Below, piece by piece: positions 830-63,810 of a stretch of DNA of 64,000 nucleotides (its first letter is position 1; the number at the start of each line of letters is the position of its first letter). The translations under genes and the position numbers were made by a program. This stretch comes from Octopus sinensis. Its lineage: Eukaryota. Location of the stretch: positions 21,267,140 to 21,331,139 of the forward strand of contig NC_043023.1 in the NCBI RefSeq assembly GCF_006345805.1, given 5' to 3'. Below the pieces are notes generated by a model, which was given only the letters and a program-made list of their open reading frames with translations, did not search any database and was not told where the DNA came from.

Positions 830-3800
830 AACACACTCACAGGCAAGGAACACAGGTACAAGATTTTTGGGCAGGGAACACTGACGGGGTCGGGGGCGTG
901 GGTATACTTCTTGCGGAGAAATGGGTAGATAAGGTAATCGAGGTAGTCAGAGTAAGTGACAGAGTAATTAAAATTAGATTAGTCATTCACCATAGTTCAG
1001 CTACCATCATCTCGGCATATGCCCCTCAACCAGGGCTACCGGAAGGACAAAAAGACCAATTCTATGACACCCTATTGCGGACTACCTCGTTGACATATGA
1101 CAGTGACCTTCTCTTCGTGGCAGGGGATTTTAATGGACATGTTGGTCGGCATGTCGGGGGCTTCCATGGCGTTCATGGAGGCTACGGTTTTGGCTCTCGT
1201 AATGAGGAGGGAACCAGGCTGCTGGAGTTCTGCGATGCAAATGACCTTATGGTCTGCAATACCAACTTCAGGAAACCCACCTCTCACCTAGTCACCTACC
1301 GTTCTGGCAGACACACTAGCCAGATTAACTACATCCTTGCCAGAAAAAGGGAAAGAGGGCTGCTTACAAATGCCAAAACCTTTCCAGGCGAAGAATGTAC
1401 TCCTCAACATAGATTAGTAGTTAGCGACTTCAGGATCAGAGCTAAATGGTTGCCCAGAAGAAGACCAGCTTGGAGGAGAAGGGTCTGGAAGCTTAAAGAT
1501 CCTGCAAATGGACAGAGATTTAGAGACATATTACTCGAAGCCTTTGACAAAATAGAAGGGGATATAGCTTCATTTAATGTGGAAGACAACTGGAGATTTC
1601 TACGGGACAATCTGCTGACAGCCACTGACCAGATCTGTGGATGGAGCAAAGTACCAGCTCGACCCAGAGTAACATGGTGGTGGAACACTGTGGTTGACAG
1701 GGCTATTAGACAAAAGAGACAGGCTTGGAAGGACTGGAAGAACGGTGGTAGCAGGGAATTGTATCAGACAGCCAGAAGGGAAGCTAGGAGACAGGTTTAT
1801 TTAGCCAGAGGGGAAGCGGATAAGAAAAAATTTGCCAATGTTCTGAGCCGTGAGGATAAAAGACTTGAGGTATTTCATGTTGCAAGACAGTGTGTGAGAG
1901 AGAATCGTGATGTGGTAGGAGAGAAGTGTGTTCGCACGGATGATGGTTCACTTGCGCTAAATGAGGATGCAAAGAGAGAGGTTTGGAGATGCCACTATGA
2001 AAGGTTGCTGAATAAAGAAAATGAATGGGATAAAGAGAGTCTGCCGAATGTCAACCCAACAGAGGGACCAGCCATCCGAGTTGAAAATTCTTTGGTAGTT
2101 AAAGCAATTAGAAGCATGAAGACAGGGAAAGCCCCAGGCCCATCAGGAATTACTGCAGAGATGCTCAAAATATCTGGCAGTGTCGGCTATAACCTAGTCA
2201 CCCGTATAGTCAACCAGGTGATACACGAAGGAGTCATACCGAATGACTGGTGTGGCAGCATACTAGTCAACTGCTACAAAGGTAAAGGTGATGCCCTAGA
2301 TACAAATAATTACAGAGGTATCAAGCTGTTGGATCAGGTGATGAAGGTTACGGAGAGGGTCATAGCCCAACTAATTAGAGAGAGAGTTAGTTTAGATGAG
2401 ATGCAGTTTGGGTTCGTGCCAGGGAAAAGTACCTCTGATGCTATATTCCTGGTAAGGCAGCTGCAGGAGAAATACTTAGCCAAAGATAAGCCCCTGTACC
2501 TGGCTTTCGTTGACATGGAGAAAGCCTTTGATAGGGTCCCCCGATCCCTTATCTGGTGGTCAATGAGGAAACTAGGGATAGATGAATGGCTGGTGAGGGC
2601 TGTGCAAGCCATGTACAGAGATGCCGTAAGTAAGGTTAGGGTTGGCAACATGTACACAGAAGAATTCAAAGTAGAGGTTGGGGTCCACCAGGGTTCAGTG
2701 CTCAACCCCCTCCTATTTATCATAGTCCTCCAGGCAATTACGGAGGAATTCAAGACAGGTTGCCCCTGGGAGCTCCTCTATGCTGACGACCTTGCTCTAA
2801 TTGCTGAGTCACTATCAGAACTGGAGGAGAAGTTCCAGGTGTGGAAGGAGGGCCTAGAATCGAGGGGCCTTAGAGTCAATCTAGCTAAAACCAAAGTCGT
2901 AATAAGTTGGAAGGTAGACAATCCACAAATGTCTTCAGGAAGATGGCCCTGTTCAATCTGTAGAAAAGGTGTGGGTAGAAACTCTATAAGATGTACCCAG
3001 TGTAAGCTATGGACACATAAGAGGTGCAGCAATGTCAAAGGTAGGCTAACTGGGAAGATAGTTTTTGTATGTGGCAGATGCTCGGGAGCATTAACCTCCG
3101 AAAATCTGCAGAAAACAACTTCCGTCACTTTCCAGGGGAAAAAAACTATAAGTTGTTGATAGCTTCCGTTATCTAGGTGACCAAGTCAGTTGTGGGGGTG
3201 GGTGCGCTGAAAGTGTAACTGCTAGAATAAGAATAGCCTGGGCAAAGTTTAGGGAGCTCTTACCTCTGCTGGTGACTAAAGGCCTCTCGCTCAGAGTAAA
3301 AGGCAGACTGTATGATGCAGGTGTACGAACAGCCATGCTACATGGCAGTGAAAAATGGGCCGTGACTGCTGAGGACATGCGTAAGCTTGTGAGGAATGAA
3401 GCCAGTATGCTCCGATGGATGTGTAATGTCAGTGTACATACTCGACAGAGCGTTAGTACCTTGAGAAGCATTAGTTGTACCTAAGAAGCATCAGTTGTGG
3501 TGTGCAAGAGAGATGATTGCTCTGGTATGGTCATGTGGCGAGAATGGATGAAGATAGGTGTGTGAGAAAGTGCCAATCCCTAGCAGTTGAGGGAACCCGT
3601 GGAAGAGGTAGACCCAGGAAAACCTGGGACGAGGTGGTGAAGCACGACCTTCGAACTTTAGGCCTCACTGAGGAAATGACCAGCGACCGAGACCTTTGGA
3701 AATATTCTGTACGTGAGAAGACCAGGCAGGTCAAGTGAGCCCAGCCCACTTATGCATGCCTTTCCTCCCTTGGACACAAAGACCTGTTGAGGCAAGCGAA

Positions 3801-4267: not shown

Positions 4268-5311
4268 ATCATCATCATCATCATCATCATTTAGCGTCCG
4301 TTTTCCATGCTAGCATGGGTTGGACGGTTCAACTGGGGTCTGGGGAGCCCGATGGCTGCACCAGGCCAGTCAGATCTGGCAGTGTTTCTACAGCTGGATG
4401 CCCTTCCTAACGCCAACCACTCCGAGAGTGTAGTGGGTGATTTTATGTGCCACCGACACAGGTGCCAGACGAGGCTGGCGAACGGCCACGCTCGGATGGT
4501 GTTTTTATGTGCCACCGACACAGGTGCCAGACGAGGCTGGCAGACGGCCACGCTCGGATGGTGTTTTTATGTGCCACTGACACAGGTGCCAGATGAGGCT
4601 GGCGGACGGCCACGATCGGATGGTGTTTGTTACGTCCCCAAAGCACGGAGGCCAGTCTATGCGGTACTGGCTACAGCCACGTTCGGATGATTTTCTTGTG
4701 TGCCACCGGCACTGGTACCACAAAGATACAAATTCCATTGATGTTCATCTATTTTGATTTGATTTGATTTGATTTGATTTGATTTGATTTGATTTTCACT
4801 TGCCTCAACAGGTCTTCACAAGTGTCACAGGAAGGAAGGAAGGTATGCACAGGTGGACTGGTACCACAAAGATACAAATTCCATTGATGTTCATCTATTT
4901 TGATTTGATTTGATTTGATTTGATTTGATTTTCACTTGCCTCAACAGGTCTTCACAAGTGTCACAGGAAGGAAGGAAGGTATGCACAGGTGGACTGACTA
5001 CGTCCCAAGTAGGGGCCACGGGTTATGGCCTGACTAGTCTTGCCGGGTCTTCGGTTGGTGTTTTTATGTGCCACCGACACAGGTGCCAGATGAGGCTGGC
5101 GAACGGCCACGATCGGATGGTGTTTGTTATGTGCCCACGTCACAGAGGCCAGTCGATGCGGTACTGGCTACGGCCACATTCGGATGGTTTTCTTGTGTGC
5201 CAACGGTACTGGTACCACAAAGATACAAATTCCATTGATGTTCATCTATTTTGATTTGGTTTGATTTGATTTGATTTGATTTGATTTGATTTTCACTTGC
5301 CTCAACAGGTC
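4268..5311 (-). mobile_element. Non-coding RTE-3'UTR-derived element with internal 62-bp and ~330-bp tandem repeats
   Basis: (CAT)n then reverse complement of the RTE tail; 62-bp units start at 4445, 4507, 4569; (GATTT)n blocks; closely matches 31722-33311. Confidence 0.85.
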
Positions 5312-10160: not shown

Positions 10161-11335
10161 GACCAAGGGTAATCCCGGAAACTGGCCTTCCCCGGTTTTA
10201 AAATATACACTGCTCTACATCTTAGAGTGTGCTTCTTCTCCGGATTTATCTTTTCTGCAAACAAAACAAATATATACGTAGGTATGTCATTATTCAGTTT
10301 ATTTCCAGATATTCTATTTTTCACTTTATGTCAACATCCGCTGGACAGCTAATTCCCACAACTGTGAACAGTTTCTCTATATATGTATGTATGTATGTCT
10401 GCACACACACACACACACACGTTGTGATATAATTGTCACTTAGTCTACCTCAGGAATTTCAGGGTTTTTTGAGTTTTATTACAAATGGGGGATTGGGAAA
10501 TGGAGTATTGACCCATTTTGCATCGGACCCTTGTGGTTTGGATGTGTTGCATCCTCCGGTACAGATTCATTGCATCTGGTGTCTTGTTTTACAGAAGAAA
10601 CCTCACTAAATATTCTCGGTTTCGCTTGGCATGTTGTTGCCAGGAGGTTGTTGGCTATAATGCTATAATCCAAGAACCTACTGACAACAACAGCATACCA
10701 AGCGATACCGAGAACTCTCCCACCCACAAGGAATCGATGCAAGATGGGTCAAACCAATTGTTGTGATGAATAAATTTTCTCGTGAACTTCATTTTACATA
10801 TTCCTCATTCAACATATATATTTATATATCCAACAGTAATGTATATAAATCTCTCTCTCTCTCCTATATATATATATATATATATATATTTGAGTGTGTT
10901 TCTGTGTATGTGTGTGTGCACACGCATTAATTTCATGGGGGTGGACACTAACCACCTCAACAGTTTTATGAACTTCTTATTAATTATAACAACATCAAAA
11001 GTATACTTTAGAAATTTTAATTCTTCTTTACTAGTCTTGATCTGTTAATCATGTGTTCACTCGTGTTCAGCTCCCCTAAAACTTACTATAGTTAGGAATA
11101 AAGGTAGATTAAGCTGAAACAATCTATTTAGGACATCTTTATCCTGTCTAGAACACATTCTCAAAGCAACATCTAGAGGATCTTACGAAGGTTGATTTTA
11201 CGGGCAAACATCAAATGTACATGATCAGTTTGATCAAGTATACAGTAGAAGACAATAATGACACATTGATATCCATCCTGATTTTCATGTAAATTTTCAT
11301 TTTCTATTTTTACTTCCACAAAGGGTTCACTTCAG

Positions 11336-11533
11336 TTGGATATTCGGAACAAAAATAAAATGACACCATTGCTTGAAGCCGTTTCCCGGGGTCACCTCGG
11401 AATGACACACAAGCTAATAGCCCTGGGTGCAAGCATAAATGCTGTTGATGGTGAAGGTAACAGCTGTTTGCACCTTGCCATGGAAACAGAAGTGTTTAAT
11501 TCCGAGGGTGCACCCATGGATTTACTAAACGAA
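11336..11533 (+). CDS. Ankyrin-RING-Death protein, ankyrin exon
   Basis: LDIRNKNKMTPLLEAVSRGHLGMTHKLIALGASINAVDGEGNSCLHLAM... (two ankyrin repeats); CAG at 11333-11335, GTAAGT at 11534; phase 0-0. Confidence 0.9.
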
Positions 11534-11622
11534 GTAAGTTTTTAAATTGTTTGTGTGTGTATATATATATCATCATCATCATCATCATCATCATTTAACG
11601 TCCGATGATGATGATGATGATG

Positions 11623-27560: not shown

Positions 27561-27908
27561 GAGGAAATGGATGGATCATATGCTTTCACTGTTGGAGGTC
27601 AATGTTAATTCTTGAGGTTCTGATATACTTTTGCCTTCACAAAAGTTTTCCTGCCCTCGTTTACCATATATTTTCTCAAGTATAATTTTCAATTAATTTT
27701 CTTTAAAAATCTCGTTTAATTCAAACTCTTTGTTATTTTTGTCAATAGAAAACAATGTCTTATATTTTTCCTGTTTCTTAGCTATTTCTTTTTTGATTTC
27801 TCTAATGATAAAGTTTGTTTGTTATATTCATAACAACCTACAGTACACAGCGTTTTATGTTATTGTCAGTGTTGTTGCATTTATTTCTTATTGTTGTGTC
27901 TTTTGCAG

Positions 27909-28108
27909 CTATTTTTTTAGGAGTTGATACAACTGAACTGAAAATTGATGATGAGTCTATTGACACTGTAAAACAAGGCTACCTGATGCTTCGCGAATGG
28001 TTCAAAAATTGCGACCCAGAAACACGGACACACGCAACATTACGTGCAGCTCTTGAAGAAGCTGAATGTTTCACTGCGATGGAATGTCTGTCATTAGACG
28101 CAAAGTGA
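27909..28108 (+). CDS. Ankyrin-RING-Death protein, terminal exon (AIFLGVDTTELKIDDESIDTVKQGYLMLREWFKNCDPETRTHATLRAALEEAECFTAMECLSLDAK*)
   Basis: TTTTGCAG acceptor at 27907-27908; Death-domain signatures FLG, Q.Y.ML..W, T...L..AL; TGA at 28106-28108. Confidence 0.9.
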
Positions 28109-31721: not shown

Positions 31722-33308
31722 ATCATCATCATCATCATCATCATCATTTAACGTCCGCTTTCCATGCTAGCATGGGTTGGACGGTTCAACTGGAGTCTGG
31801 GGAGCCCGAAGGCTGCACCAGGCCAGTCATATCTGGCAGTGTTTCTACAGCTGGATGCCCTTCCTAACGCCAACCACTCCGAGAGTGTAGTGGGTGATTT
31901 TATGTGCCACCGACACAGGTGCCAGACGAGGCTGGCGAACGGCCACGCTCAAATGGTGTTTTTTATGTGCCACCGACACAGGTGCCAGACGAGGCTGGCA
32001 GACGGCCACGCTCGGATGGTGTTTTTATGTGCCACCGACACAAGTGCCAGATGAGGCTGGCGAACGGCCACGATCGGATGGTGTTTGTTACGTGCCCACA
32101 GCACGGAGGCCAGTCGATGCGGTACTGGCTACGGCCACGTTCGGATGGTTTTCTTGTGTGCCACCGGCACTGGTACCATAAAGATACAAATTCCATTGAT
32201 GTTCATCTATTTTGATTTGGTTTGATTTTCACTTGCCTCAACAGGTCTTCACAAGTGTCATAAGAAGGAAGGTATGCACAGGTGGACTGACTACGTCCCA
32301 GGTAGGGGCCACGGGTTATGGCCTGACTAGTCTTGCCGGGTCTTTGGATGGTGTTTTTATGTGCCACCAACACAGGTGCCAGATGAGGCTGGCGAACGGC
32401 CACGATCGGATGGTGTTTGTTACGTGCCCACAGCACGGAGGCCAGTCGATGTGGTACTGGCTACCACCACGTTCGGATGGTTTTCTTGTGTGCCACCGGC
32501 ATTGGTACCACAAAGATACAAATTCCATTGATGTTCATCTATTTTGATTTGTTTTGATTTGATTTGATTATGATTATGATTATCACTTGCCTCAACAGGT
32601 CTTCACAAGTGTCATTTGATTTGATTAGATTAGCACTTGCCTCAACAGGACTTCACAAGTGTCATAAGATGGAAGGTATGCACAGGTGGACTGACTACAT
32701 CCCAGGAAGGGGCCACGGGCTATGGCCTGACTAGTCTTGCCGGGTCTTCGGACAGGTGCCAGATGAGGCTGGCGAACGGCCACGATCGGATGGCGTTTGT
32801 TATGTGCCCACAGCACGGAGGCCAGTCGATGCGGTACTGGCTACAGCCACGTTCGGATGGTTTTCTTGTGTGCCACCGATACTGGTACCACAAAGATACA
32901 AATTCCATTGATGTTCATCTATTTTGATTTGGTTTGATTTTCACTTGCCTCAACAGGTCTTCACAAGTGTCACACACTTGCCTCTGCCTCAACAGGTCTT
33001 CACAAAGTGTCACACACTTGCCTCTGCCTCAACAGGTCTTCACAAGTGTCACACACTTGCCTCAACAGGTCTTCACAAGTGTCATAAGAAGGAAGGTATG
33101 CACAGGTGGACTGACTACGTCGCCGGGTCTTCGGATGGTGTTTTTATGTGCCACCGACACAGGTGCAAGATGAGGCTGGCGAACGGCCACGATCGGATGG
33201 TGTTTGTTGTGCCCACAGCACGGAGGCCAGTCGATGCGGTACTGGCTACGGCCACGTTCGGGTGGTTTTCTTGTGTGCCACCGTCACTGGTACCACAAAG
33301 ATACAATT

Positions 33309-33311
<3 letters not shown>
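31722..33311 (-). mobile_element. RTE-3'UTR-derived element with nested tandem repeats (about four higher-order units)
   Basis: Same 3 x 62-bp block as 4268-5311 (31902, 31965, 32027), then recurring GATACAAATTCCATTGATGTTCATCTATTTTGATT...CACTTGCCTCAACAGG units. Confidence 0.88.
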
Positions 33312-33367
<56 letters not shown>

Positions 33368-35854: not shown

Positions 35855-36090
35855 GAGACGCAATGGCCCAGTGGTTAGGGCAGCGGACTCGCGGTTTCGA
35901 TCCCCAGACCAGACGGAAACTGAAAGAAGCCTGTCGTATATGTATATGTATATGTGTGTGTCTGTGTTTGTCCCCCCAACATCGCTTGACAACTGATGCT
36001 GGTATGTTTACGTCCCCGAACTCACAACGTAACGACAAACGAAATACCGCAAAGCATTTCGCCCGGCGTGCTAACGATTCTGCCAGTTCG
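35855..36090. mobile_element. Chimeric SINE remnants (family A head, family B body, inverted family C head)
   Basis: GGAGACGCAATGGCCCAGTGG; CGGAAACTGAAAGAAGCC; reverse complement of GGCGAACTGGCAGAATCGTTAGCACGCC. Confidence 0.65.
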
Positions 36091-36099
36091 CCACAAATC

Positions 36100-36600
36100 T
36101 GTAAACTCTGTTGTTGAAGACATGGGAATTGCCGATTATCTGGTTGAGTTCTTAAACTCACTGGATCCACAACGAGCTCCCCCTCGTTGCCTTCGATTGA
36201 AAATGAGCGCTCCAATCATGCCTCTGCAGACCTTTTCCCAACCGAAGCTGTGCAGTGGTACAAGAATTGTTGTGAAGAAATTAACGAGAAATATCATAGA
36301 AGCCACAATAATTTTTGTCTTTGGAAAAGGTGAAGATATATTTATGCCTCACTTAATTTTAATACCTTCAAATATTCGCATCGAATTCAAACGACTTCAA
36401 TTTCCAATACGTCAGTCTCTTGCGATGTCCATTGATAAGTACCAAGATCAGACTTTCAAAGTTACTGCTTTGCAATTAGAGAAGGGTTGTTTTTTTACAA
36501 AGACATATGCTGGGGTTCCAGAGTGGGGAGCAAAGACAATTTTATCATTTTCACCCCTACAGGTAAAACTCAAACCAATGTCTGTTAGGACGTTTTTAGC
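36100..36600 (+). mobile_element. Helitron PIF1-like helicase C-terminal fragment
   Basis: EFLNSLDP..PP..L.LK, KLCSGTRIVVKKL.RNIIEATI, EFKRLQFPIR.SLAMSIDK.Q motifs in ORF 35996-36631. Confidence 0.85.
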
Positions 36601-36847
36601 ATGGGATCAACGAACAAGATTTGCAGAATGAATAAAAACTTTGAATTGAAATTGTCAACGCAACACTATATTCGCATAAGAAAATGTATTTCTATTTTTT
36701 GCTTGTTGTAATACTTAAGTTCAATAATTCTGTTGTTTCTGGAGAGAATCCTTTTCGTTTTGTGCCTTATTATGTAAAACACTCACCGGTAAAATTCCCA
36801 CTTTTTTCTTATTTTTATTGTCCTAAAATTTTCGTTGCGTCTTGCAA

Positions 36848-36914: not shown

Positions 36915-37562
36915 CGAAAGGATGAAAGGCAAAGTCGACCTCGGCGGAATTTGAACTCAGAACGTAACGGCAGACGAAATACCTATTTCTTTACTACCCA
37001 CAAGGGGCTAAACACAGAGGAGACAAACAAGGACAGACAAACGGATTAAGTCGATTATATCGACCCCAGTGCATAACTGGTACATATTTTATGGACCTCG
37101 GAAGGATGAAAGGCAAAGTCGACATCGGTGGAATTTGAAACCAGAATGTAACGGCAGACGAAATACCTATTTCTTTACTGCCCACAAGAGGCTAAACACA
37201 GACGGGACAAACAAGGACAGAAAAGCGGATTAAGTCGATTATATCGAGCCCAGTGCGTAACTGGTACTTAATTTATCGACCCTGAAAGGATGAAAGGAAT
37301 TTGAACTCAGAACGTAACGGCAGACGAAATACCTATTTCTTTAGTACCCACAAGGGGCTAAACACAGAGGGAACAAGCAAGGACAGACAAACATATTAAG
37401 TCGATTATATCGAGCCCAGTGCGTAACTGGTACTTATTTAATGGGCCCCGAAAGGATGAAAGGCAAAGTCGACCTCGGCGGAATTTGAACCCAGAACGTA
37501 ACGGCAGACGAAATACTGCTAAGCATTTCGCCCGGCGTGCTAACGTTTCTGCCAGCTCGCCA
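36915..37562 (-). mobile_element. SINE family C: one tRNA-like head followed by ~3.5 tandem ~180-bp bodies
   Basis: Head at 37520-37562; GAAAGGATGAAAGG unit recurs near 36918, 37101, 37283, 37450. Confidence 0.85.
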
Positions 37563-38302
37563 CATTAATAAAAGCGAAATTCCCATGTGCCTGTGACCCC
37601 TGTCCCTCTGTCTACATAGACATATTCTACCTTTTTGGAATCAGGATGATCCCAGGATTGAAACTCTGCTCTACATTTGGTTCTTGACGATCCAGCATTG
37701 GGATCTGGCTCAAAACCATTTTGGCTGCTATTTCTAGCAGTTGAAGCCAGTGTGAGGTACAAGAGTTACGTCCCTTAGCTTAACGTGTAACTGAGGAATT
37801 TTGTAGTTTTTTTCACATTTTTCAGTTACTAGACTGCGGCCACGCTGGGGCACCGCATTGAAGAATTGTAATCTAAGAAATTGACACAAGTTATTTCTTA
37901 CTTCTGTCTGGTAGATTTTATTGGCCTCTTATAGCGAACCGCTAAGTCACATGGAGATAAACGTAAACGACAGACATACACACAAAGCCACTATACACGC
38001 ACGCACACACACACACATACATACATACATACGTACATACATACGTATATACAGACGTACATACGTACATACATACATACATACATACATACGTAATACA
38101 TGCATAATACATATATACATACACACATATATACATACATACATACGTACATATTTACGTACGTACATACATACACACATACACGTACATACATACATAC
38201 ATAATACATACATACGTACGTACGTACATACATACCACATACATACACACAGAAATGTATGTGTGTATATATATATATATATATATGTATATAAATATAT
38301 AT

Positions 38303-38930
38303 ATCATCATCGTTTAACGTCCGTTTTCCATGCTAGCATGGGTTGGACGGTTCGACCGGGGTCTGGGAAGCCAGGAGGCTGGCAACGGCCACGATCGAAT
38401 GGTGTTTTTTATGTGCCCCCAGCACGGAAGCCAGTCAAGACGGCGGTGGCATCAGTCACGTTGAGATGGTGTTTTGAAAGTGCCATTGGCGCGGGTATCA
38501 GAACTACAATTTCCATTTGATGTTGATGTACTTGACTCAATAGGTCTCCTCAAGCACAGCAGGTCACCCCACGATCCAAGGTAACCACAGCAGGCCGTCC
38601 TGCGATCCAAGGTATTTCCGATGGGTTGGGGCTGTTATGTGAAGCTGCTGCAGGAAACAGCCTCACGTTATTTGTCGGGTCATCGCAGTTACAGCATATC
38701 TCCAGATGTCTCGGTCTTTCGTCATTGCCTCTGTGAGGCCCAACGCTCGAAGGTCATGCTTAATCACCTCATTCCATGTCTTCCTGGGTCTACCTCTACC
38801 CCGGATTCCTTCAACTGTTTGGGAGTGGCACTTTTTCGCACATCTCTTCTCATCCATCCGGAGAACATGACTATACCAGCGCAAACATCTTTCTTGCCTG
38901 CCACATCCGATGCTTGTTATGTCCAGCATT

Positions 38931-38937
<7 letters not shown>
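38303..38937 (-). mobile_element. 5'-truncated RTE LINE
   Basis: (CAT)n tail; reverse ORF ...WYSHVLRMDE...GRGRPRKTWNEVIKHDLRALGL. Confidence 0.88.
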
Positions 38938-38970
<33 letters not shown>

Positions 38971-39090
38971 ACAATCAAGGAACGACCATAATAGGCCATT
39001 CACCCACTAGAAATAACAGCCAAAGCTTCAACCGCAAATAAAGATTAATTCCGTAAACAGGAGAAAATTTTAAAAAACATTTACCCTGTA

Positions 39091-39197
39091 ATTTCTTGTA
39101 CGATGTACCGTTTCATCTGCTGTTTAATGGTAAACTAACCTGATTAAATTAAATCAAGCCAATCTTCCATAGGCCCTCAGATTCTTCAGCAAGAAAT
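39091..39197 (-). ncRNA. Type I hammerhead ribozyme (inverted copy)
   Basis: Reverse complement of 39634-39740; predicted cut between 39099 and 39098. Confidence 0.85.
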
Positions 39198-39633
39198 AGC
39201 CAAGTCGGAACAGATATTTTCACGAGGCATTTCCGACCCTGCCAAGGCAATATCTGACCTAAAATTTTCAAATCGTCGCACTGTTTACGGAATTAATCTT
39301 TATTTGCGGTTGAAGCTTGGCTGTTATTTCTAGTGGGTGAATGGCCTATTATGGCCGTTCCTTGATTGTTGATGTTGAACTTAAAAATGGTCTGTGACTA
39401 TTTAATTTTTTCCCACTAGGTCGCTGGTGGCAAAAGGAATTCTACAAAATTTTTTTTGCCACCCTATATTGATTAATTATGGATTTTCTGTTAATTCCGT
39501 AATGGAATCGGCGGCTTATATTTATTTGCTGCCGATAAATTTGGCGCGAGTGCGACGATTTGAAAATTTTAGGTCAGATATTGCCTTGGCAGGGTCGGAA
39601 ATGCCTCGTGAAAATATCTGTTCCGACTTGGCT

Positions 39634-39740
39634 ATTTCTTGCTGAAGAATCTGAGGGCCTATGGAAGATTGGCTTGATTTAATTTAATCAGGTTAGTTTA
39701 CCATTAAACAGCAGATGAAACGGTACATCGTACAAGAAAT
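39634..39740 (+). ncRNA. Type I hammerhead ribozyme
   Basis: Stem I ATTTCTTG/CAAGAAAT (8 bp), CTGAAGA, stem II ATCTG/CAGAT, GAAA, stem III ACG/CGT with GTACAT loop, GTA triplet; cut after 39732. Confidence 0.88.
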
Positions 39741-40124
39741 TACAGGGTAAATGTTTTTTAAATTTTCTCCTGTTTACGGAATTAATCTTTATTTGCGGTT
39801 GAAGCTTTGGCTGTTATTTCTAGTGGGTGAATGGCCTATTATGGCCGTTCCTTGATTGTTGATGTTGAACTTAAAAATGGTCTGTGACTATTTAATTTTT
39901 TCCCACTAGGCCGCTGGTGGCAAAAGGAATTCTACAAAATTTTTTTTGCCACCCTATATTGATTAATTATGGATTTTCTGGTTAATTCCGTAATGGAATC
40001 GGCGGCTTATATTTATTTGCTGCCGATAAATTTGGCGCGAGTGCGACGATTTGAAAATTTTAGGTCAGATATTGCCTTGGCAGGGTCGGAAATGCCTCGT
40101 GAAAATATCTGTTCCGACTTGGCT

Positions 40125-40231
40125 ATTTCTTGCTGAAGAATCTGAGGGCCTATGGAAGATTGGCTTGATTTAATTTAATCAGGTTAGTTTACCATTAAAC
40201 AGCAGATGAAACGGTACATCGTACAAGAAAT
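40125..40231 (+). ncRNA. Type I hammerhead ribozyme (second tandem copy)
   Basis: Same as 39634-39740; cut after 40223. Confidence 0.88.
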
Positions 40232-40462
40232 TACAGGGTAAATGTTTTTTAAATTTTCTCCTGTTTACGGAATTAATCTTTATTTGCGGTTGAAGCTTTG
40301 GCTGTTATTTCTAGTGGGTGAATGGCCTATTATGGCCGTTCCTTGATTGTTGATGTTGAACTTAAAAATGGTCTGTGACTATTTAATTTTTTCCCACTAG
40401 GCCGCTGGTGGCAAAAGGAATTCTACAAAATTTTTTTTGCCACCCTATATTGATTAATTATA

Positions 40463-40494
<32 letters not shown>

Positions 40495-43400
40495 AAATAT
40501 TATTAGAGACAAAACCACTATTTTGCAAAGCAAACAAGGAAAGACTTAATCAATACATAAAATTTTAATAAATAGTCAAAAAAACCGCCACTACAATCGT
40601 TTCTTGTCTTGATCGACAATCTTCAGGTGGACTTCCAATCTAAAAAATCAAAATTTTAAAATATAAAAATAATAATTTTAAATAATTAAAGTATAAATGA
40701 AAAAATATAAGTATATAATCCATATATAACCTATATATAATCCATATCGAAAATATAGACAAATTACCACGAATTCCCTAAAAAAAACCATGATAAAACA
40801 AAACTCTTAAAAACATATAACGATAAAATCTCCCTTTGCTAAATTCTAAAACAAACCTATATAGTAATCCCCCTAACCTAAACATTCACACACAAATACA
40901 CACACGTAAACCACAGACCCACGACTTATACACATACCTATACTAACTTATAAACCTCAATATACACCAAAACCCACTCCCTCCCCACACAGACAAATTA
41001 ACACATACATCCCAAAACCTAAATAACAAACCCATATACACATTCACACACAAACACACACACACACGCAAAACACGCACACACAACAGATACATATACT
41101 CCCTCACATATACGCATATACATACTCACTAAACTCGACATATACAACAATACTTACACACCCACAAAAATCATTAAATACATTTATGAGCTTTAACTCA
41201 GCTTAGCAGCTCTAACAAACAACTTGCAGTAACCCAATCCCATTCTCTATGCCTACCTCACTACTACACTATTCCATTCACATTCCAAGCAACGCTAGTC
41301 CACCACCCGGTTATGCACGTGGCAAAACGAACACCACTCAAAAATTATGAATGAAACAATGTAAAAAAATAACCAACATCGAAAATAGACAAATTACCAC
41401 GAATTACCTAAAAAAAACCATGATAAACCAAAACTCATAAAAGCATATAACGATAAAATCTCCCTTTGCTAAACCCTATAACAAACTTATATAGCAATCC
41501 CCCTAACCTAAACATTCACACACAAATACACACACGTAAACCACAGACCCAAGACTTATACACAAACCTATACTAACTTATAAACCTCAAAATACACCAA
41601 AACCCACTCCCTCCCACACAGACAAATTAACACATACATCCCAAAACCTAAATAACAAACCCAAATACACATTCACACACAAACACACACACACGCAAAA
41701 CACACACACACAACAGATACATATACTCCCTCACATATACGCATATACATACTCACTAAACTCGATATATACAACAATATTTACACACCCACACTCATAC
41801 AGATAAATAAATTAATTATACAACTAAAAACTCACAACCAATCTCATATACATAAACACTCCTATGAAAACAACATTAAATACATCGTAATTAACCAGAA
41901 TATCAAAAATAACAATATGACATAAGGATAAATCAAATACATACTTACAATTCAGTTACAAATTATGAAGTGAAATTAAATTCTTAGCCGTTAAAAAACC
42001 AAACAAAAATTACGTTACCATAGAAATAACTTATGTAAAAAAAGAATACGCGCCATAGAAAGTAAACGTCATTCAAAATATGAATGGAGAAATATAATAA
42101 ATGGAACTAAAAACTATATCACGTAGCAAACCAACGCTACTTAAAAAAATTTATTATGAATGGATTCTATAAAAACTACCATGAAAATCATTATATACAT
42201 TTATGAGCTTTAGCTCACCCTAGCAGCTCTAACAAACAACTTACAGTAACCCATAACTATTCTCGATGCATACCTCACTACCACACTAATCCATTCACAA
42301 TTCCAAGCAACGCTAGTCCACCACCCGGTTACAATTCCCAACTCCACCTATTCATTCACAATTTAAACGACGTTCCCTTCCACAACGCTACATATAAGCC
42401 TCAACATATACACCGGAGATACACTTACACATCCGTGCGGATGGGTGAGAGTATACATTAAGTGTAGTGATGGGGCTCCCATTTCTAAACAATTTGTACC
42501 TATGTGGTAGTCTCCATGTGTATATTCACGCACGGGTATAAATGCAGGGGGTACACGCTCACTTCATTTGCGTGTACCCCTCACATGTACATATGCATAC
42601 TATTTTGGCTCGATATATGCAACAATGTAATCGCGCCCGTGTGTGTGAGCATTCACTGGTTGTGCAATTCACCCATCTGGGTGTGAGTGGGTGTAAACGT
42701 ATCGCTGTGGAGGTCGAGCTTGATACGTATATATTAGTGTGTATTAGGGGTTGTACGTACTAATTATGTGCATGTGCTTCACGCACTTGCGTCCATGTAT
42801 GGATGAATATATTGGGATTACTATGTGGGTGTAAATAGGGTATGGGGGGGAGTTTTGTCATTGTATGGGTGTGGGTTTCATTTATGATGGTGGTTAGTTG
42901 GTGATTATTAGTATGTTCTGTATATTTGGGTTAGTTATATATTATTCTAGTGTGTATAATTGTATACATATAATTGGTGTGAATGGGATTACTCCCATTT
43001 TTGGGGATGTATGTGTTTATTTATCCATGTGGGGCGGGAGTGGCCGTTAGGTGCATATGCTGAGGCTCACATGCAATCCCAAGTACAACGAATGAAGTGG
43101 GCACTTATATTTGTTATGGGTGTGTGTACTTTATTATAAAAGACAATACCCAAATAAAATCTGTCAATTCAACATACAATAAAAAACAAAATACAAAGGG
43201 ATCTTAAACATTCACACATACATACAAAACTCAATAAAAACACCACTAAATAACACCCAAAACATATAAATATATCCTCCAATACATATAACAAATGCAA
43301 AATAAAAATACATAATAAAATAAAATAAAAATAAAAATAAAAAAATAAAAAAATCTAATATAAATTATTAAAGTTTTAACGTACCATAAACTGTTAAATT

Positions 43401-43800
43401 AATATACATTAAAAATGAACTAATTAAAACAAAGAAATATCAATAAAGACTAACTATAATTAAAGCCTAGACAACATAACCAAAAATATATTATCTAAAC
43501 TAATTTAAACTAAACTAAAGTAACCTAAAAGGGAACTATTATTGCTATTTATCATGAAACTTATTATATAGGTAAAGTAACTTGTGTCTGCATTTTATTT
43601 TGCGCTCTTCACCAGTATTAAGTAAATTATCATACTTATAAAATAAAATTTCTTTAAACTCATTAGAGCATAAATAACAACAATTAGCTCCTATATTATA
43701 AATAATATTTTATAATATTTTATAATATTTTATAATATTTTACTATAAAATTGGATTTAATCCTAAATCTGATTTTTTTCCCTGTAAATTTGGATTTATT
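40495..43800 (-). mobile_element. Non-coding, strand-skewed repeat with internal direct and inverted duplications; Penelope-like or retrozyme-like
   Basis: Direct repeats ~40750-41165 vs ~41385-41795 and ~41166-41330 vs ~42185-42325; diverged inverted copy near 42980-43090; hammerhead at its minus-strand 3' end. Confidence 0.5.
40588..40630 (-). ncRNA. Minimal type I hammerhead ribozyme
   Basis: CCAC-CTGAAGA-TTGTC(gatcaa)GACAA-GAAAC(gatt)GTA/GTGG; all core nucleotides present, stems I and II perfect. Confidence 0.8.
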
Positions 43801-43813
43801 CCCTAATATTTAT

Positions 43814-43875
<62 letters not shown>

Positions 43876-43939
43876 TATATTATTTTATTTTTATTTTATC
43901 TAGTTTCATCTCACGAGCTGTGGCCATGCTGGGGCACCG

Positions 43940-43985
<46 letters not shown>

Positions 43986-44195
43986 TGTTGAAATGGAAAG
44001 ATGAATTATCTTGTTACAGATTATTTAAAAGTTTAACCGATACCTGGGTAGCAAAAATCACAGCAGAAAAAACATGGTTGGAGTTATGACCATAGGGTGT
44101 TGCAACCGTGCGTTTGTGCGGGTAATTGAAGTTTAATATAATTAGTGAATGGAAGAAATGGAGTTGAACGAAGACTGTACAGAATTCCTTTTATT

Positions 44196-44281
44196 ACATT
44201 CTACACATGTTTCAAAGGCCACAATTTTCCAAATTCTGATTGAATAAGGATACCATATTGCAGCTTTCTCTTCAGGAAAAT
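44196..44281 (-). ncRNA. Hammerhead-like motif with imperfect stems
   Basis: ATTTTC-CTGAAGA-GAAAGCTGCA...TGTGGCCTTT-GAAAC(ATGT)GTA/GAATGT; core intact, stem I only 3 contiguous bp. Confidence 0.55.
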
Positions 44282-45049
44282 CCAGGAATTACGATGTCCA
44301 AACAAAAACAAAGGCGCAGCAAGCAATTCGAACAATAACGCTCCTTAAGAGCCCATGTATTGGGGCAAACTGTTTCTCAATATACGTTGAAATCGGGGGG
44401 TTGGTGGAGGCCGACAAAAAGGTCCGTTGGAATAAATCAAGGTCAGGCCGCGGTCAAATCTAGTAGGTGAGGAATTAATGAAAACAAGGGGTGTGAAGAT
44501 ATTCTGTGTAACCAAAATTAAAGCTCTGAATATTTTAAGAATTCAGGGTGTATTATTTAGGTGCGAGACACTACCTACCTACATGCATGTGTGTGTATGC
44601 TAGCCTGTGTATGCGTGGGGCGCGAGATAGTGAGCACTGCTGAAAATAGCCGGTCAGGCGGCTGAAATAATTCTGTGTTCGTGTGTCCGTCAGTGGCCTG
44701 CTTATCTAAATTAACATCGCCAAAAATCAGAGGGGTATATAACTCCTGCCCTTGCTTCTAAAAACCGACCAATCGCCCAAGGGGAGTAATTTCCCCTTGC
44801 AAAAATTGTTCAGAGATTTTTTTCAAAAAAAATTTTTTCAAAATTTATTTCCTTTTATTAGGATATCAAGGTGTTAATTGTCTTAGGTATCATTTATATG
44901 TAAGAAACGTATGACGCCGCCAATGGGGACATCGAAAAGCAGTCTGTAAAAGCCCGTTTACCAAACGGCCTCTGGCGAACAATATGTGGAAAAGCTCAGA
45001 GTTACAAAGATTACATATCCTTTATTCCATTCACTAATTATATATATAT

Positions 45050-45167: not shown

Positions 45168-45261
<94 letters not shown>

Positions 45262-45475
45262 TCATCTCTCTGTCTATATATCTACCCTCTTTGTAATGTT
45301 GGAAAATGGAATAAGTATAAAAATGAATATTGTCGATTTAATTTAAAATGTCCATATGTGGCTGAAGCGTGCTCTACATTTTAAAACTGACGTAATATTT
45401 ACATTGTTTAATTAAATGAAGTAGCATGAAACGAGTAAACTACACTACCTTTGGATATTCTCGTTGCTTATATTG

Positions 45476-45517
<42 letters not shown>

Positions 45518-58200: not shown

Positions 58201-58621
58201 TAAGCTATATTTGACCCGTCGCTCCGTTCTGATTTCGAATTCCCCAAAGTGCACTTTGCTTTCTTCCTTTCAACGTCGAGAAAATAACAGACTAGGCTCT
58301 ATGTAATCGACTCGCCCTCACCTCACCCCAAGCTGCTCTTGTGGCAGAAATTTGAAATCACACTAATTATCATTATTATTTGAAACAGTTTTATTTGGGC
58401 CCCTTCAGGTTCGTCGCTCCGTTACAGGAATCTGGCTTGTTGAAGATTGGCGCAACAGAACCAGAATATATCCAGAAAGTTGGTGGAACATCCCAATAGA
58501 ATCAGCAAACAGGATTAAATACAGCGGACCCTATATTGATGCAAGGATCAGGAAAACAAGTCAAGTACTTTTAGGAGAGATCGTCTGCCCAGTCGTATGT
58601 CAATATCTCATCGTATTAAAG

Positions 58622-59010
58622 AAGCGAGCTGGCAGAAACGTTAGCACGCCGGGCGAGATGCTTAGCGGTATTTCGTCTGCCGTTACGTTCAGAGTTCAAA
58701 TTCCGCCGAGGTCGACTTTGCCTTTCATCCTTTCGCGGTCAATAAATTAAGTGCCAGTTACACACTGGGGTCGATAAAATCGACTTAATCCCTTTGTCTG
58801 TTCTTGTTTGTCCTCTCTGTGTTTAGCTCCTTGTGAGTAGTAAAGAAATAGGTATTTCGTCTGCCGTTAGGTTCTGAGTTCAATTTACGCCGAGGTCGAC
58901 TTTGCCTTTCTTCCTTTCGGAGTCGATTAAATATGTACCAGTTACGCACTAGGGTCGATATAATCGACTGGCCCCCTCCCTCCAAATTTCGGGCCTTGTG
59001 CCTCAAGTAG
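58622..59010 (+). mobile_element. SINE family C: head plus two tandem bodies
   Basis: GCGAGCTGGCAGAAACGTTAGCACGCC head; GTATTTCGTCTGCCGTTA unit recurs near 58668 and 58852. Confidence 0.85.
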
Positions 59011-61925: not shown

Positions 61926-63810
61926 TAACTTAGAATAACTTAGAAAGGTTTTGGCCAGTATTGGCCCAGGCCATGTCTAACTTATTAGCACTACCTGGCG
62001 AAGTCTTTCAATTCAGGATTTGGGCACCAAGGCCGATTCGAGCAGAGAGTTATTGTTTGCGGAGACATATCCGGGTGTGGGTGGTTTGTCCGAGACTGTT
62101 TGAAGGAATTTGTCCAAAGACTTCTTGAATTTTGTGTGGTCAGTTTCTGTTTTGACGTGTCCTGGTGTAATGTTGAAGAGAGCGGGTCCAATTGAGGTGA
62201 AATAGTTGTGCCCTATTGTCGTTATGTGATGCGATTTAGATTTTTGTTGTGGACGGATGGCACGTGGTCCAAGCCTGGGATGTATTTTGAAGGTGATGCC
62301 AACATCATTCGGACAGTGCTGATGGTTATTTTCCACATCATACAGATAATGTAGCGTTCACGGCGTCGTTGGAGTGAATACGGTTTCAGCTTCTCTAGTC
62401 TACCCCAGTAGTCAAGGTCTGACATGCCATCTATCATTTTTGTGATTGACCTTTGGGGAGCTTCAATTCTCATAATATTTTGTTTTGTGTAGGGAGACGA
62501 CAGTGGACAGCAGCATTCAAGGTGGGGTCGGGCAAAAGTGGAGAAGAGAAGGATAATAGTGTGGGAATGTTCGTCTGGAAGGTTCCGAGAATCCAGGAAC
62601 ACATTCTGCGGGCCATGTCAACTTTGCTGCTTATATGTGTAGCCCAGCTTATGTTGTTGTCCACTGTTACTCCCAAGTCTCTGATGTTGTTGGATGCCAT
62701 GAAAATTTCTCCAGAAGGAAGAGAGTAGGGGAGTTTCAGAGCGTCCTCCCTTCCAAAGTGGATCAGTTCGAATTTGTCTTCATTTAGCAACATGTTATTC
62801 TTTTCCGCCCATTGGACACAGCCAGTAGGTCTGACTGAAGGTTATTCGATCATCCACGCCATTGATGACCTTCTGGAGCTTGGAATCATCAGCGAAGGTT
62901 CTGATGTTACTGTGTTTGATGGTGTCAGTAATATCACTTATGTAGATGATGAAGAGAAGTGGGCCCAACACAGTGCCTTGTGGGACACCACTGCTGACTT
63001 TGGCTGGGCTGGATTTGGCTCCTTCGACTACAACATGTTGGGTTCTGTTAGACAGGAAGCACTTGATCCACTGCAGAAGCTTTCCAGTGACACCAATATT
63101 GGACAGCTTTCTCAGAAGGATCTTATGATCAACCCTGTCAAAGGCCTTGCTGAAATCAAAGTAGATGACATTAGTGTTGGAACCCTCTCCCAAGGCTCTC
63201 AAAATGTCATCAAAATGATGCAGTAGCTGCGTCAGGCAATCTCTCCCATTACGGAATCCATCCTGGTTGGAGTTCAGCATATTATGACTCTCAAGGAAGT
63301 GAGTCATGCGTGATCTCAGCACTCTCTCAAATACCTTAATGATATGAGAGGTGAGAGTGAGATTGGACGGTAATTCACGGCAAGCGATTGTTTCCTTTTT
63401 TGAAAACTAGGACAACAGACTGGGATAGAAGGTCTCTGGTATATATCCAGCATCCAGTGAGTTCCGCCACAGTTTGGCTAGAGGGGTGCAAGTTGGTTTT
63501 GACACATCTTCAAGACACAAGCAGGGAACCTATCGGGACCTACTGCTGAATTATGCTTCATTTCCTTTATTGCTGCTAAGACATCAGGAGCCCCAAAGGT
63601 TATGTCCGATAAAGTGTATTGGGGAGTAACATCACTGATACAGCCCAGATCAGTCATATCAGGATTGCTGAAAACAGAGGCAATATGTTTCTGCAATATC
63701 TCTCCCATGGTTTTGGCATTGTCTTGAAGAGTACCATTTTCATCAATCAGAGGGCCAACAGTAGAACCAGTGACTCTGTGTTTTTTTGCAAATGAAAAGA
63801 ACACTTTGGA
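61925..63810 (-). mobile_element. 5'-truncated CR1-like LINE (RT + 3' end)
   Basis: IYFDFSKAFDRVDH, SGVPQGTVLGPLLF, FADDSK, IRDLGVTVDNN, RPHLE.C, LQRRRERY; short CTAAGTTATT repeated tail. Confidence 0.92.

Follow-up and report, generated by a model that had tools for sequence, protein, structure and literature searches.

A 64,000-nucleotide stretch of Octopus sinensis DNA (contig NC_043023.1, positions 21,267,140 to 21,331,139 of the forward strand), referred to here as the window, contains a 1.5-kb insertion composed of copies of a 491-bp unit in which a type-I hammerhead ribozyme motif recurs. The locus is, in our judgement, likely to be one compound insertion of a non-autonomous, non-coding animal retrozyme of the type lacking long terminal repeats (LTRs), copied from circular or multimeric RNA by twin priming in a (TA)n microsatellite. 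The copying enzymes were probably those of a Penelope-like retrotransposon (Penelope-like element, PLE). The features that carry this reading can be followed in the letters of the DNA, namely the motif, the unit structure, the inverted-plus-direct geometry, the continuity across predicted cut sites, a re-used 3' end, and a paralogous (TA)n tract without the element. Catalysis, a circular template rather than an uncut multimer, and the nature of the copying enzyme are inferences.

Retrozymes are the main known ribozyme route to abundant small circular RNAs in animal cells, and their copying back into DNA has so far been argued mostly from their co-occurrence with PLEs. The value of the present locus lies in its unusually legible insertion architecture. 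It appears to display the copying event, with both complementary DNA (cDNA) starts on a TA microsatellite and more than two template lengths read across the cut site; the same 3' end is found in an independent insertion, and the same geometry recurs where a PLE relic ends and in a hammerhead element of another, unrelated family. The model that follows from the locus, in which UA microhomology primes synthesis on a template that is circular or uncut, is concrete and open to testing, the more so as good genomes and RNA data from tissues are available for this lineage. A full-text literature search gave no relevant paper pairing octopus with hammerhead ribozymes or retrozymes, no cephalopod retrozyme was found in the searchable literature, and ribozymes are not mentioned in the 2026 repeat annotation of O. 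vulgaris (PMC13282606). A preliminary description of this DNA had called the family possibly undescribed in its lineage; the full-text search, which is the basis for judging that suggestion, agrees with it.

Tandem Repeats Finder (TRF) delimited a tandem array at 39281-40461 with a period of 491 bp, 2.4 copies and 99% matches. The array consists of a truncated, a complete and a partial unit (1181 nt in total; Table 1), and is preceded by an inverted copy of 316 nt. Unit 3 is identical to unit 2 at 238 of 238 aligned positions, whereas unit 1 differs from unit 2 in three places (two 1-nt deletions in short runs and one C>T) and the inverted copy in two (one 1-nt insertion and one C>T). With these five differences in ~1000 nt among its copies, the insertion is young as judged by divergence. 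All five fall outside the hammerhead, which, given that it makes up 22% of the unit, is not significant (p ~0.3). The two base substitutions, one at unit position 113 (38985, inverted copy) and one at unit position 179 (39421, unit 1), are alike in turning GGCCG into GGTCG; neither site is a CpG, and the likeness may be a coincidence.

The 491-bp unit has a G+C content of 37.5% and is non-coding. Its longest open reading frames (ORFs) comprise 72 aa (GTG start) and 55 aa (ATG start), for which Pfam gave no credible match (a single one, with E = 0.34 and 10.7 bits against a 25-bit cut-off), and a collection of 5.8 billion proteins contained no relative. Two exact look-ups of these ORFs in protein collections gave nothing either, an outcome that says little for or against expression. 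Nor were tRNA-like parts found. The claims of the preliminary description that a ~490-bp tandem repeat is present with a hammerhead in each complete unit, and that the units are nearly identical and lack an ORF, are thus upheld.

The hammerhead motif was read directly from the sequence and was also recovered by a hammerhead descriptor scan of both strands of the window. In hammerhead 1, an 8-bp stem I (39634-39641, ATTTCTTG, with 39733-39740, CAAGAAAT) leads into CUGAAGA (C3-A9, 39642-39648), followed by a 5-bp stem II (AUCUG/CAGAU, 39649-39653 with 39712-39716) that closes 58 nt, and by GAAA (G12-A14 plus A15.1, 39717-39720). Stem III comprises 4 bp (ACGG/UCGU, paired A-U, C-G, G-C and G-U, 39720-39723 with 39728-39731) and a UACA loop. 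The cut site is a GUA triplet with A17 at 39732, and the cut is predicted after this position. All of these parts had been listed in the preliminary description and were confirmed by both approaches, with the exception that its "short" stem III is not borne out. Helix I is open and helices II and III are closed, giving a type-I layout with lengths of 8, 5 and 4 bp, and the conserved core (C3-U4-G5-A6-N7-G8-A9, G12-A13-A14, A15.1-U16.1 and a non-G H17) is complete in all three copies. Cuts after 39732 and 40223 are predicted to release a 491-nt monomer, the spacing that had been proposed earlier.

As chance controls, the same relaxed descriptor was applied to 200 dinucleotide-shuffled 64-kb windows and to 5000 shuffles of the unit. 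It matched 0.005 times per shuffled window, and in none of the 5000 shuffled units (0/5000). Exact and gapped searches for the hammerhead pattern in metagenome, viral and prokaryote contigs gave 43 loci, none of which resembles the unit, and these were set aside as chance matches. The only two that passed the descriptor (L005 and L006) differ from each other mainly at every third base, and were therefore taken to be coding DNA that matches by chance.

Minimum free energy (MFE) folding gave -159.9 kcal/mol (z = -7.2) for the linear monomer on the hammerhead strand and only -108.2 kcal/mol (z = -5.0) for its complement, and the structure is therefore strand-specific and belongs to the hammerhead strand. 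The circular monomer folds at -153.6 kcal/mol with 64% of its bases paired. Stems I and II are present in the MFE structures of the 151-nt, monomer and circular folds. The extension of helix II folds as an imperfect hairpin: a 14-bp stem capped by a hexaloop, together with two internal loops, one of tandem A-G/A-G and one of 4x4. Its stem is present in every fold tried.

Architecture of the insertion and related loci

The insertion is bracketed by (AT)16 and (TA)18, the two halves of the target microsatellite, and has no discernible target-site duplication. One arm of its inverted repeat (39065-39282) pairs without mismatch (100%) with 39549-39766. On the left, the inverted copy has its 3' end (...GTTGAT, followed by ATAT) next to (AT)n with 2 nt of microhomology, and the 3' end of unit 3 (...GATTAATTAT; ...AATTAT, followed by ATAT) runs into the right (TA)n, so that each of the two outer borders is a sense 3' end joined to (TA)n. 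The inner junction, between the inverted copy and unit 1, has a 2-nt CT microhomology and no TA remnant. Since both outer sense 3' ends lie on (TA)n and the inner junction lacks a TA remnant, the structure points to one event rather than two; and since the sequences flanking the inner junction do not mirror each other, it is not a fold-back artefact of assembly.

The sequence is continuous across the predicted cut site three times, twice in the direct array and once in the inverted copy. The template would therefore have been either a ligated circle or an uncut multimer. The inverted copy, the (TA)n setting and a further hammerhead at 40588-40630 (see below) were lacking from the preliminary account.

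The window was compared with ~300 kb of octopus DNA, including loci from O. sinensis (L045 and L048) and O. vulgaris (L044 and L046). The O. sinensis contig VCDQ01005432.1 (L045) is collinear with the window from 21.6 to 37.75 kb at 97-99% identity, a stretch that ends at window position 37754, 1.2 kb before the element. Both O. vulgaris loci are 93-97% identical to the window, from which L044 departs after ~37.5 kb owing to other insertions.

A second, independent copy of the family was found at 12518-12782 of L046 (O. vulgaris OX597819.1), with ~94.5% identity. It spans unit positions ~476 to 491 and on to 243, being 5'-truncated inside the hammerhead and reading across the cut site. Flanked by (TA)n left and right, it terminates in ...GATTAATTATGAAT, 5 nt past the end position of the array in the window. 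With this O. vulgaris copy being ~5% diverged, the family is older than the insertion in the window. Hence, where the preliminary description spoke of a young family, youth holds for the insertion and not for the family as a whole.

At the paralogous O. sinensis locus L048, a tail of a long interspersed nuclear element (LINE) and the (TA)n align with 38780-38968 of the window, after which the two diverge until homology picks up again at window position 45236. L048 keeps the (TA)n tract without the retrozyme element, and the tract is therefore older than the insertions now inside it. Window positions 38968-45039 face 19774-20211 of L048, so that a single old (TA)n(ATAG)n tract encloses ~6 kb of window sequence; this content includes the retrozyme and a second family, B (see below), in place of which L048 carries an insert resembling a short interspersed nuclear element (SINE). 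With ~6 kb inserted in it, the tract is an insertion hotspot.

Table 1. Features of the window and of the comparison loci. Positions refer to the window unless a comparison locus (L) is named.
Feature	Position	Strand	Found by or remarks
Left half of target microsatellite, (AT)16	38937..38968		TRF
Inverted, 5'-truncated copy, unit positions 308 to 491 to 131	38967..39282	-	inverted repeats, BLAST, piecewise alignment
Hammerhead 3, in inverted copy, predicted cut between 39099 and 39098	39091..39197	-	descriptor scan
Unit 1, 5'-truncated, unit positions 38 to 491	39281..39732	+	piece-by-piece alignment
Hammerhead 1	39634..39740	+	sequence reading, descriptor scan, folds, narrow Rfam search
58-nt extension of helix II	39654..39711	+	MFE folds
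Unit 2, complete monomer of 491 nt between two predicted cut sites (1 to 491)	39733..40223	+	BLAST, piecewise alignment
Hammerhead 2, identical to hammerhead 1, predicted cut after 40223	40125..40231	+	descriptor scan
Unit 3, partial, unit positions 1 to 238	40224..40461	+	piecewise alignment
Right half of target microsatellite, (TA)18	40459..40494		TRF
Type-I hammerhead candidates, long helix II (up to 15 bp + loop)	L047 42120-42211; L046 35088-35178; L048 15061-15161 (-)
Hammerhead element C	window 45262-45478 (+); L048 20305-20392		between (ATAG)n and (TA)n
Penelope-like element relic	L047 30850-33206	-	motifs, Pfam
Host exons, ankyrin/RING (MIB2-like) gene family	11282-11542; 27812-28105	+	protein matches
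LINE reverse transcriptase	898-3159	+	weak PHD-finger (E = 5.5e-4, below Pfam cut-off) and weak AP-endonuclease matches
Separate LINE reverse transcriptase	62798-63406	-	Pfam
5'-truncated LINE 3' tail (...GRPRKTWNEV...), adjoining left (AT)n	38373-38937	-
Pif1-type helicase 2B-domain fragment, probably Helitron remnant	35990-36628	+	Pfam
Other tandem repeats (184-bp; 62/63-bp; 380-bp with (TTTGA)n)	36918-37516; 58614-58969 (inverted); 4436-4628; 31898-33312		TRF

Other hammerhead elements and a Penelope-like relic

The hammerhead of family B is compact; it occupies 40588-40630 of the minus strand, with 94 nt between it and the right (TA)n. It reads CCAC CUGAAGA UUGUC-GAUCAA-GACAA GAAA CGAUUG UA/GUGG, a motif that occurred in 0 of 1000 shuffled windows. 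It has no match in Rfam and only its stem II forms in the MFE structure, and it therefore resembles the minimal PLE type. Its host element (40495-42331) is non-coding and partly tandem, with periods of ~630 and ~1017 bp. Relatives in L047 (50796-53893) keep the core, with U-U at the 10.1-11.1 pair, contain no ORF of at least 90 aa, and are arranged as two inverted arms with 3' ends facing outward onto (TA)n.

Four more hammerheads were found in the other 236 kb of octopus DNA, against ~0.02 expected by chance. They have a long helix II and a 6-nt near-palindromic helix III segment, and in two of the four the element ends in (TA)n ~35 nt downstream. The palindromic 6-nt segments of the candidates in L047, L046 and L048 (Table 1) are CGAUCG, CAAUUG and CGUACG. 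Element C is intact in L048 (UGUGG CUGAAGA GUGCU-[51 nt]-AGCAU GAAA CGAUUG UA/CUACA), where its tail ...CTTGTATTGATTA runs into (TA)n, while its hammerhead in the window (~45358-45445) has a decayed core, with CUGAAGC and with GUA changed to AAA. Several of these tails share CCTTG(TT)GCT or TTGATTA ahead of (TA)n. The counts suggest about one hammerhead with a long helix II per 60 kb in the octopus regions examined, and this density suggests a large unannotated population of ribozyme-bearing repeats in octopus genomes. Repeats that carry hammerheads and target (TA)n may thus be common there.

L047 also contains a PLE relic, in which reverse transcriptase (RT; a weak RVT_1 match), CARPNCGTC (a CX4CxxC linker) and GIY...YVGQT (Pfam GIY-YIG, E = 0.014) follow in this order. 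Its 3' region holds CUGAAGA and a decayed ...GAACAAUCAUUA half-site, and its tail, ...TTCCTTGCTA, is followed by (TA)n. A possible YIGQT motif, without support from Pfam, is located near ~41300 on the minus strand of L046. In O. vulgaris, 336 recently active PLE insertions have been reported (PMC13282606).

Proposed mechanism and alternatives

We propose the following course of events for the insertion in the window. A tandem master copy would be transcribed, and the type-I hammerheads, judging from their intact core and three helices, would cut after GUA to give monomers of 491 nt that begin with a 5'-OH and finish with a 2',3'-cyclic phosphate. A host RNA ligase may, as in the retrozymes of coral and mussel, close the monomers into highly base-paired circles. 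A PLE endonuclease (EN)/RT with a preference for (TA)n would then nick a TA microsatellite, and the TA-ending DNA 3' end would anneal to the UA-rich ...AUUGAUUAAUUAU (unit positions ~238-243) and prime reverse transcription. The same region provides the 3' end of the O. vulgaris copy. Synthesis would go round the template more than two times (1181 nt) and thereby pass the cut/ligation site twice. At the second strand break, the DNA 3' end would prime at ...UUGAUUGUUGAU (unit position 131; UUGAUUGUUGAD-like) and give rise to the 316-nt inverted copy, with one crossing of the cut site, and the two cDNAs would be joined at the 2-nt microhomology.

In L1 twin priming, an inverted 5' segment is reportedly joined to a direct 3' segment at microhomology, with both cDNA starts at the target, and the octopus geometry is alike. 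The octopus template differs in that it has no poly(A) and is longer than one unit, and priming seems to rest on TA/UA microhomology.

A more far-reaching reading, which we hold as possible but short of likely, is that a (TA)n-targeting PLE enzyme of cephalopods twin-primes on UA-rich stretches of circular hammerhead RNAs and performs rolling-circle reverse transcription, so that the locus in the window, its O. vulgaris sibling and family B might be fossils of one mechanism. If true, this would amount to direct structural evidence for circle-templated retrotransposition and to the first cephalopod retrozyme, and would point to a lineage-typical hammerhead design with a helix II of 50-70 nt.

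Animal non-LTR retrozymes have been described from Acropora millepora (220-245 bp), Mytilus galloprovincialis (350-390 bp) and the axolotl (Cervera & de la Pena 2020, PMC7229834), and retrozymes are thought to be non-autonomous passengers of PLEs (PMC7229834; bioRxiv 10.64898/2026.07.22.740005). The octopus element shares with the animal ones the head-to-tail non-coding units with type-I hammerheads, a G+C content below 50%, a highly self-paired monomer, the lack of LTR, of a PBS (primer-binding site) and of a PPT (polypurine tract), and the co-occurrence with PLEs (the L047 relic, and the active PLEs of O. vulgaris, PMC13282606). Its 491 bp fall within the 51-972 bp of vertebrate families (bioRxiv 10.64898/2026.07.22.740005) and above the 170-400 nt of invertebrate retrozymes. 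Unlike animal retrozymes, in which helix II has ~4 bp plus a loop and helix III 1-2 bp, the octopus element has a helix II in the form of a 68-nt imperfect hairpin and a helix III of 4 bp, which gives it a monomer-competent look; it further differs in having A-U as its 10.1-11.1 pair. Plant LTR retrozymes (PMC4918200) are likewise non-autonomous and hammerhead-processed; circular RNA is made from them, and an autonomous retroelement moves them in trans. However, they have type-III hammerheads in LTRs, a PBS and a PPT, 4-bp target-site duplications and Ty3-type partners, none of which is seen here.

The preliminary description had read the repeat as a candidate retrozyme, and the head-to-tail arrangement of non-coding type-I hammerhead units, the G+C content of ~37% and the z of -7.2 for the monomer speak in favor of that. 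Its link to PLEs gains evidence from the inverted 5'-truncated copy, the insertion in (TA)n and the second copy with the same 3' end, as well as from the other octopus hammerhead elements and the PLE relic, which also end in (TA)n.

Several observations weigh against the retrozyme reading. Rfam gave no hammerhead match for the whole window at the gathering score, nor for 1.9 kb at E <= 10 (weak matches to RalA, psbM and miRNA were rejected as chance matches to hairpins). In favor of the motif, Hammerhead_1 (RF00163) was the best of 4227 families when a 136-nt stretch was searched alone, and was aligned over the full model (1-45), with the extra sequence placed in loop II (an insert of 58 nt) and loop III (6 nt). 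The score of this match was nevertheless 16.1 bits, where the gathering score is 34 (E = 0.19). At the 10.1-11.1 pair, which is the most conserved one after 15.1-16.1 (Perreault et al., PMC3088659), A-U replaces the customary G-C, so that the ribozyme could be less active; variants of this pair do occur in nature (PMC3088659, PMC2837043). The helix lengths (8 bp in helix I; 5 bp plus an internal loop in helix II) are unlike the canonical 6/4 metazoan layout, and in the internal loops, which follow 8 bp of helix I and 5 bp of helix II, no known loop-loop contact motif was recognised. Stem III is missing from the MFE structure of the monomer. Stem I is not formed in that of an 800-nt transcript, and the active fold must therefore compete with alternatives.

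Other points on the same side concern the family and its supposed partner. Two loci of the family, those in the window and in L046, were seen in the ~300 kb of octopus DNA. The 491-bp unit has no sequence similarity to the PLE relic of L047 (the only relic compared), its 3' region included. No PLE ORF was found in the window when six-frame stop-free segments of at least 85 aa were compared with Pfam, the segments with matches being two LINE-type RTs, one ankyrin exon and a Pif1 fragment. Moreover, a circular template and an uncut multimeric transcript fit the data alike.

It is unlikely, in our opinion, that the locus represents a hammerhead satellite spread at the DNA level, with a break in the fragile (TA)n tract mended either through template switching at microhomologies or through the uptake of extrachromosomal circular DNA derived from an array elsewhere, no RNA or RT being involved and the ribozyme being a passenger. 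Long AT-rich repeats are break-prone sites, and all three junctions have only 2-3 nt of microhomology, which fits replication-based repair too. Hammerhead satellites of ~500 bp exist, such as pDo500 of Dolichopoda cave crickets (PMC2837043), the unit of which is nearly equal in length to that of octopus, and pDo500, newt satellite 2 and Schistosoma Sm-alpha resemble the octopus repeat in having non-coding tandem units with one type-I hammerhead each. In contrast, these satellites occur as long arrays, and in most of them helix III is weak and dimers are required, whereas the octopus locus comprises 2.4 units and an inverted piece, is bounded by a microsatellite and has retrotransposition-type ends. 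The second locus is a single copy with the look of a classic 5'-truncated cDNA. Furthermore, two independent insertions, both in (TA)n, share nearly the same unit 3' end, and random template switching would not re-use an end. The geometry with outward 3' ends recurs in the unrelated family B, the 3' end of the PLE relic is likewise on (TA)n, and this agrees with what has been published on PLEs.

Insertions of PLEs take the form of partial tandems, and many of them bear at their 5' end a copy that is inverted and 5'-truncated; the clades with a CX2-5CxxC linker are biased to (TA)n (PMC8557442). The partial tandem with an adjacent inverted 5'-truncated copy is a feature that the octopus element has in common with PLEs that carry hammerheads in their pseudo-LTRs, above all the clades with this linker and a preference for (TA)n (Neptune, Nematis, Naiad and Hydra; PMC8557442, PMC4209133), and like them it is inserted in (TA)n without a discernible target-site duplication and has its hammerhead near the 3' side. 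The octopus PLE relic, with RT, CX4CxxC and GIY-YIG, ends in (TA)n as the retrozyme does. The 491 bp could be the terminal part (pseudo-LTR or 3'-UTR) of a longer PLE, autonomous or not, present as a heavily 5'-truncated compound insertion. PLE pseudo-LTRs bear hammerheads, PLE insertions are truncated, tandem and inverted, and the Xenopus retrozymes are sister to PLE pseudo-LTRs. We nevertheless regard this origin as quite unlikely. The period is 491 bp and not 3-4 kb, with two exact passages from cut site to cut site, whereas a truncated 3-4-kb element would repeat at its own length. Between the hammerheads there is no RT or GIY-YIG, nor is there one of PLE type elsewhere in the window, and the unit is without similarity to the 3' region of the relic. 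The three helices are well formed and not of the minimal PLE type. Given that it has no RT/EN ORF, the element is not an autonomous PLE.

That the motif arose by chance in an ordinary tandem duplication, or that the locus is an assembly artefact (collapsed or chimeric long reads), is most improbable: Rfam gave no match at the gathering score, and tandem or inverted structures do trouble assemblers (PMC8557442), but against this stand the 0/5000 shuffled units, the diverged copy with (TA)n flanks of its own in the assembly of another species, and an inner junction that is no mirror-image fold-back.

Other features of the window

The retrozyme lies ~11 kb downstream of the second of two putative exons of an ankyrin/MIB2-like gene family. 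These exons match Octopus proteins only, and are up to 95% identical to O. sinensis LOC115230672 and to O. vulgaris proteins. The LINE at 898-3159 adjoins a 100-N gap (537-636), and the best match of its RT is only 54% identical. A link of the retrozyme to Helitrons was considered and rejected, as the Pif1-like fragment is conserved at the corresponding position in O. sinensis, with a gene annotation there, and other repeats lie between. The 184-bp, 62/63-bp and 380-bp repeat families are also present at the O. sinensis and O. vulgaris loci, and are probably SINE-related.

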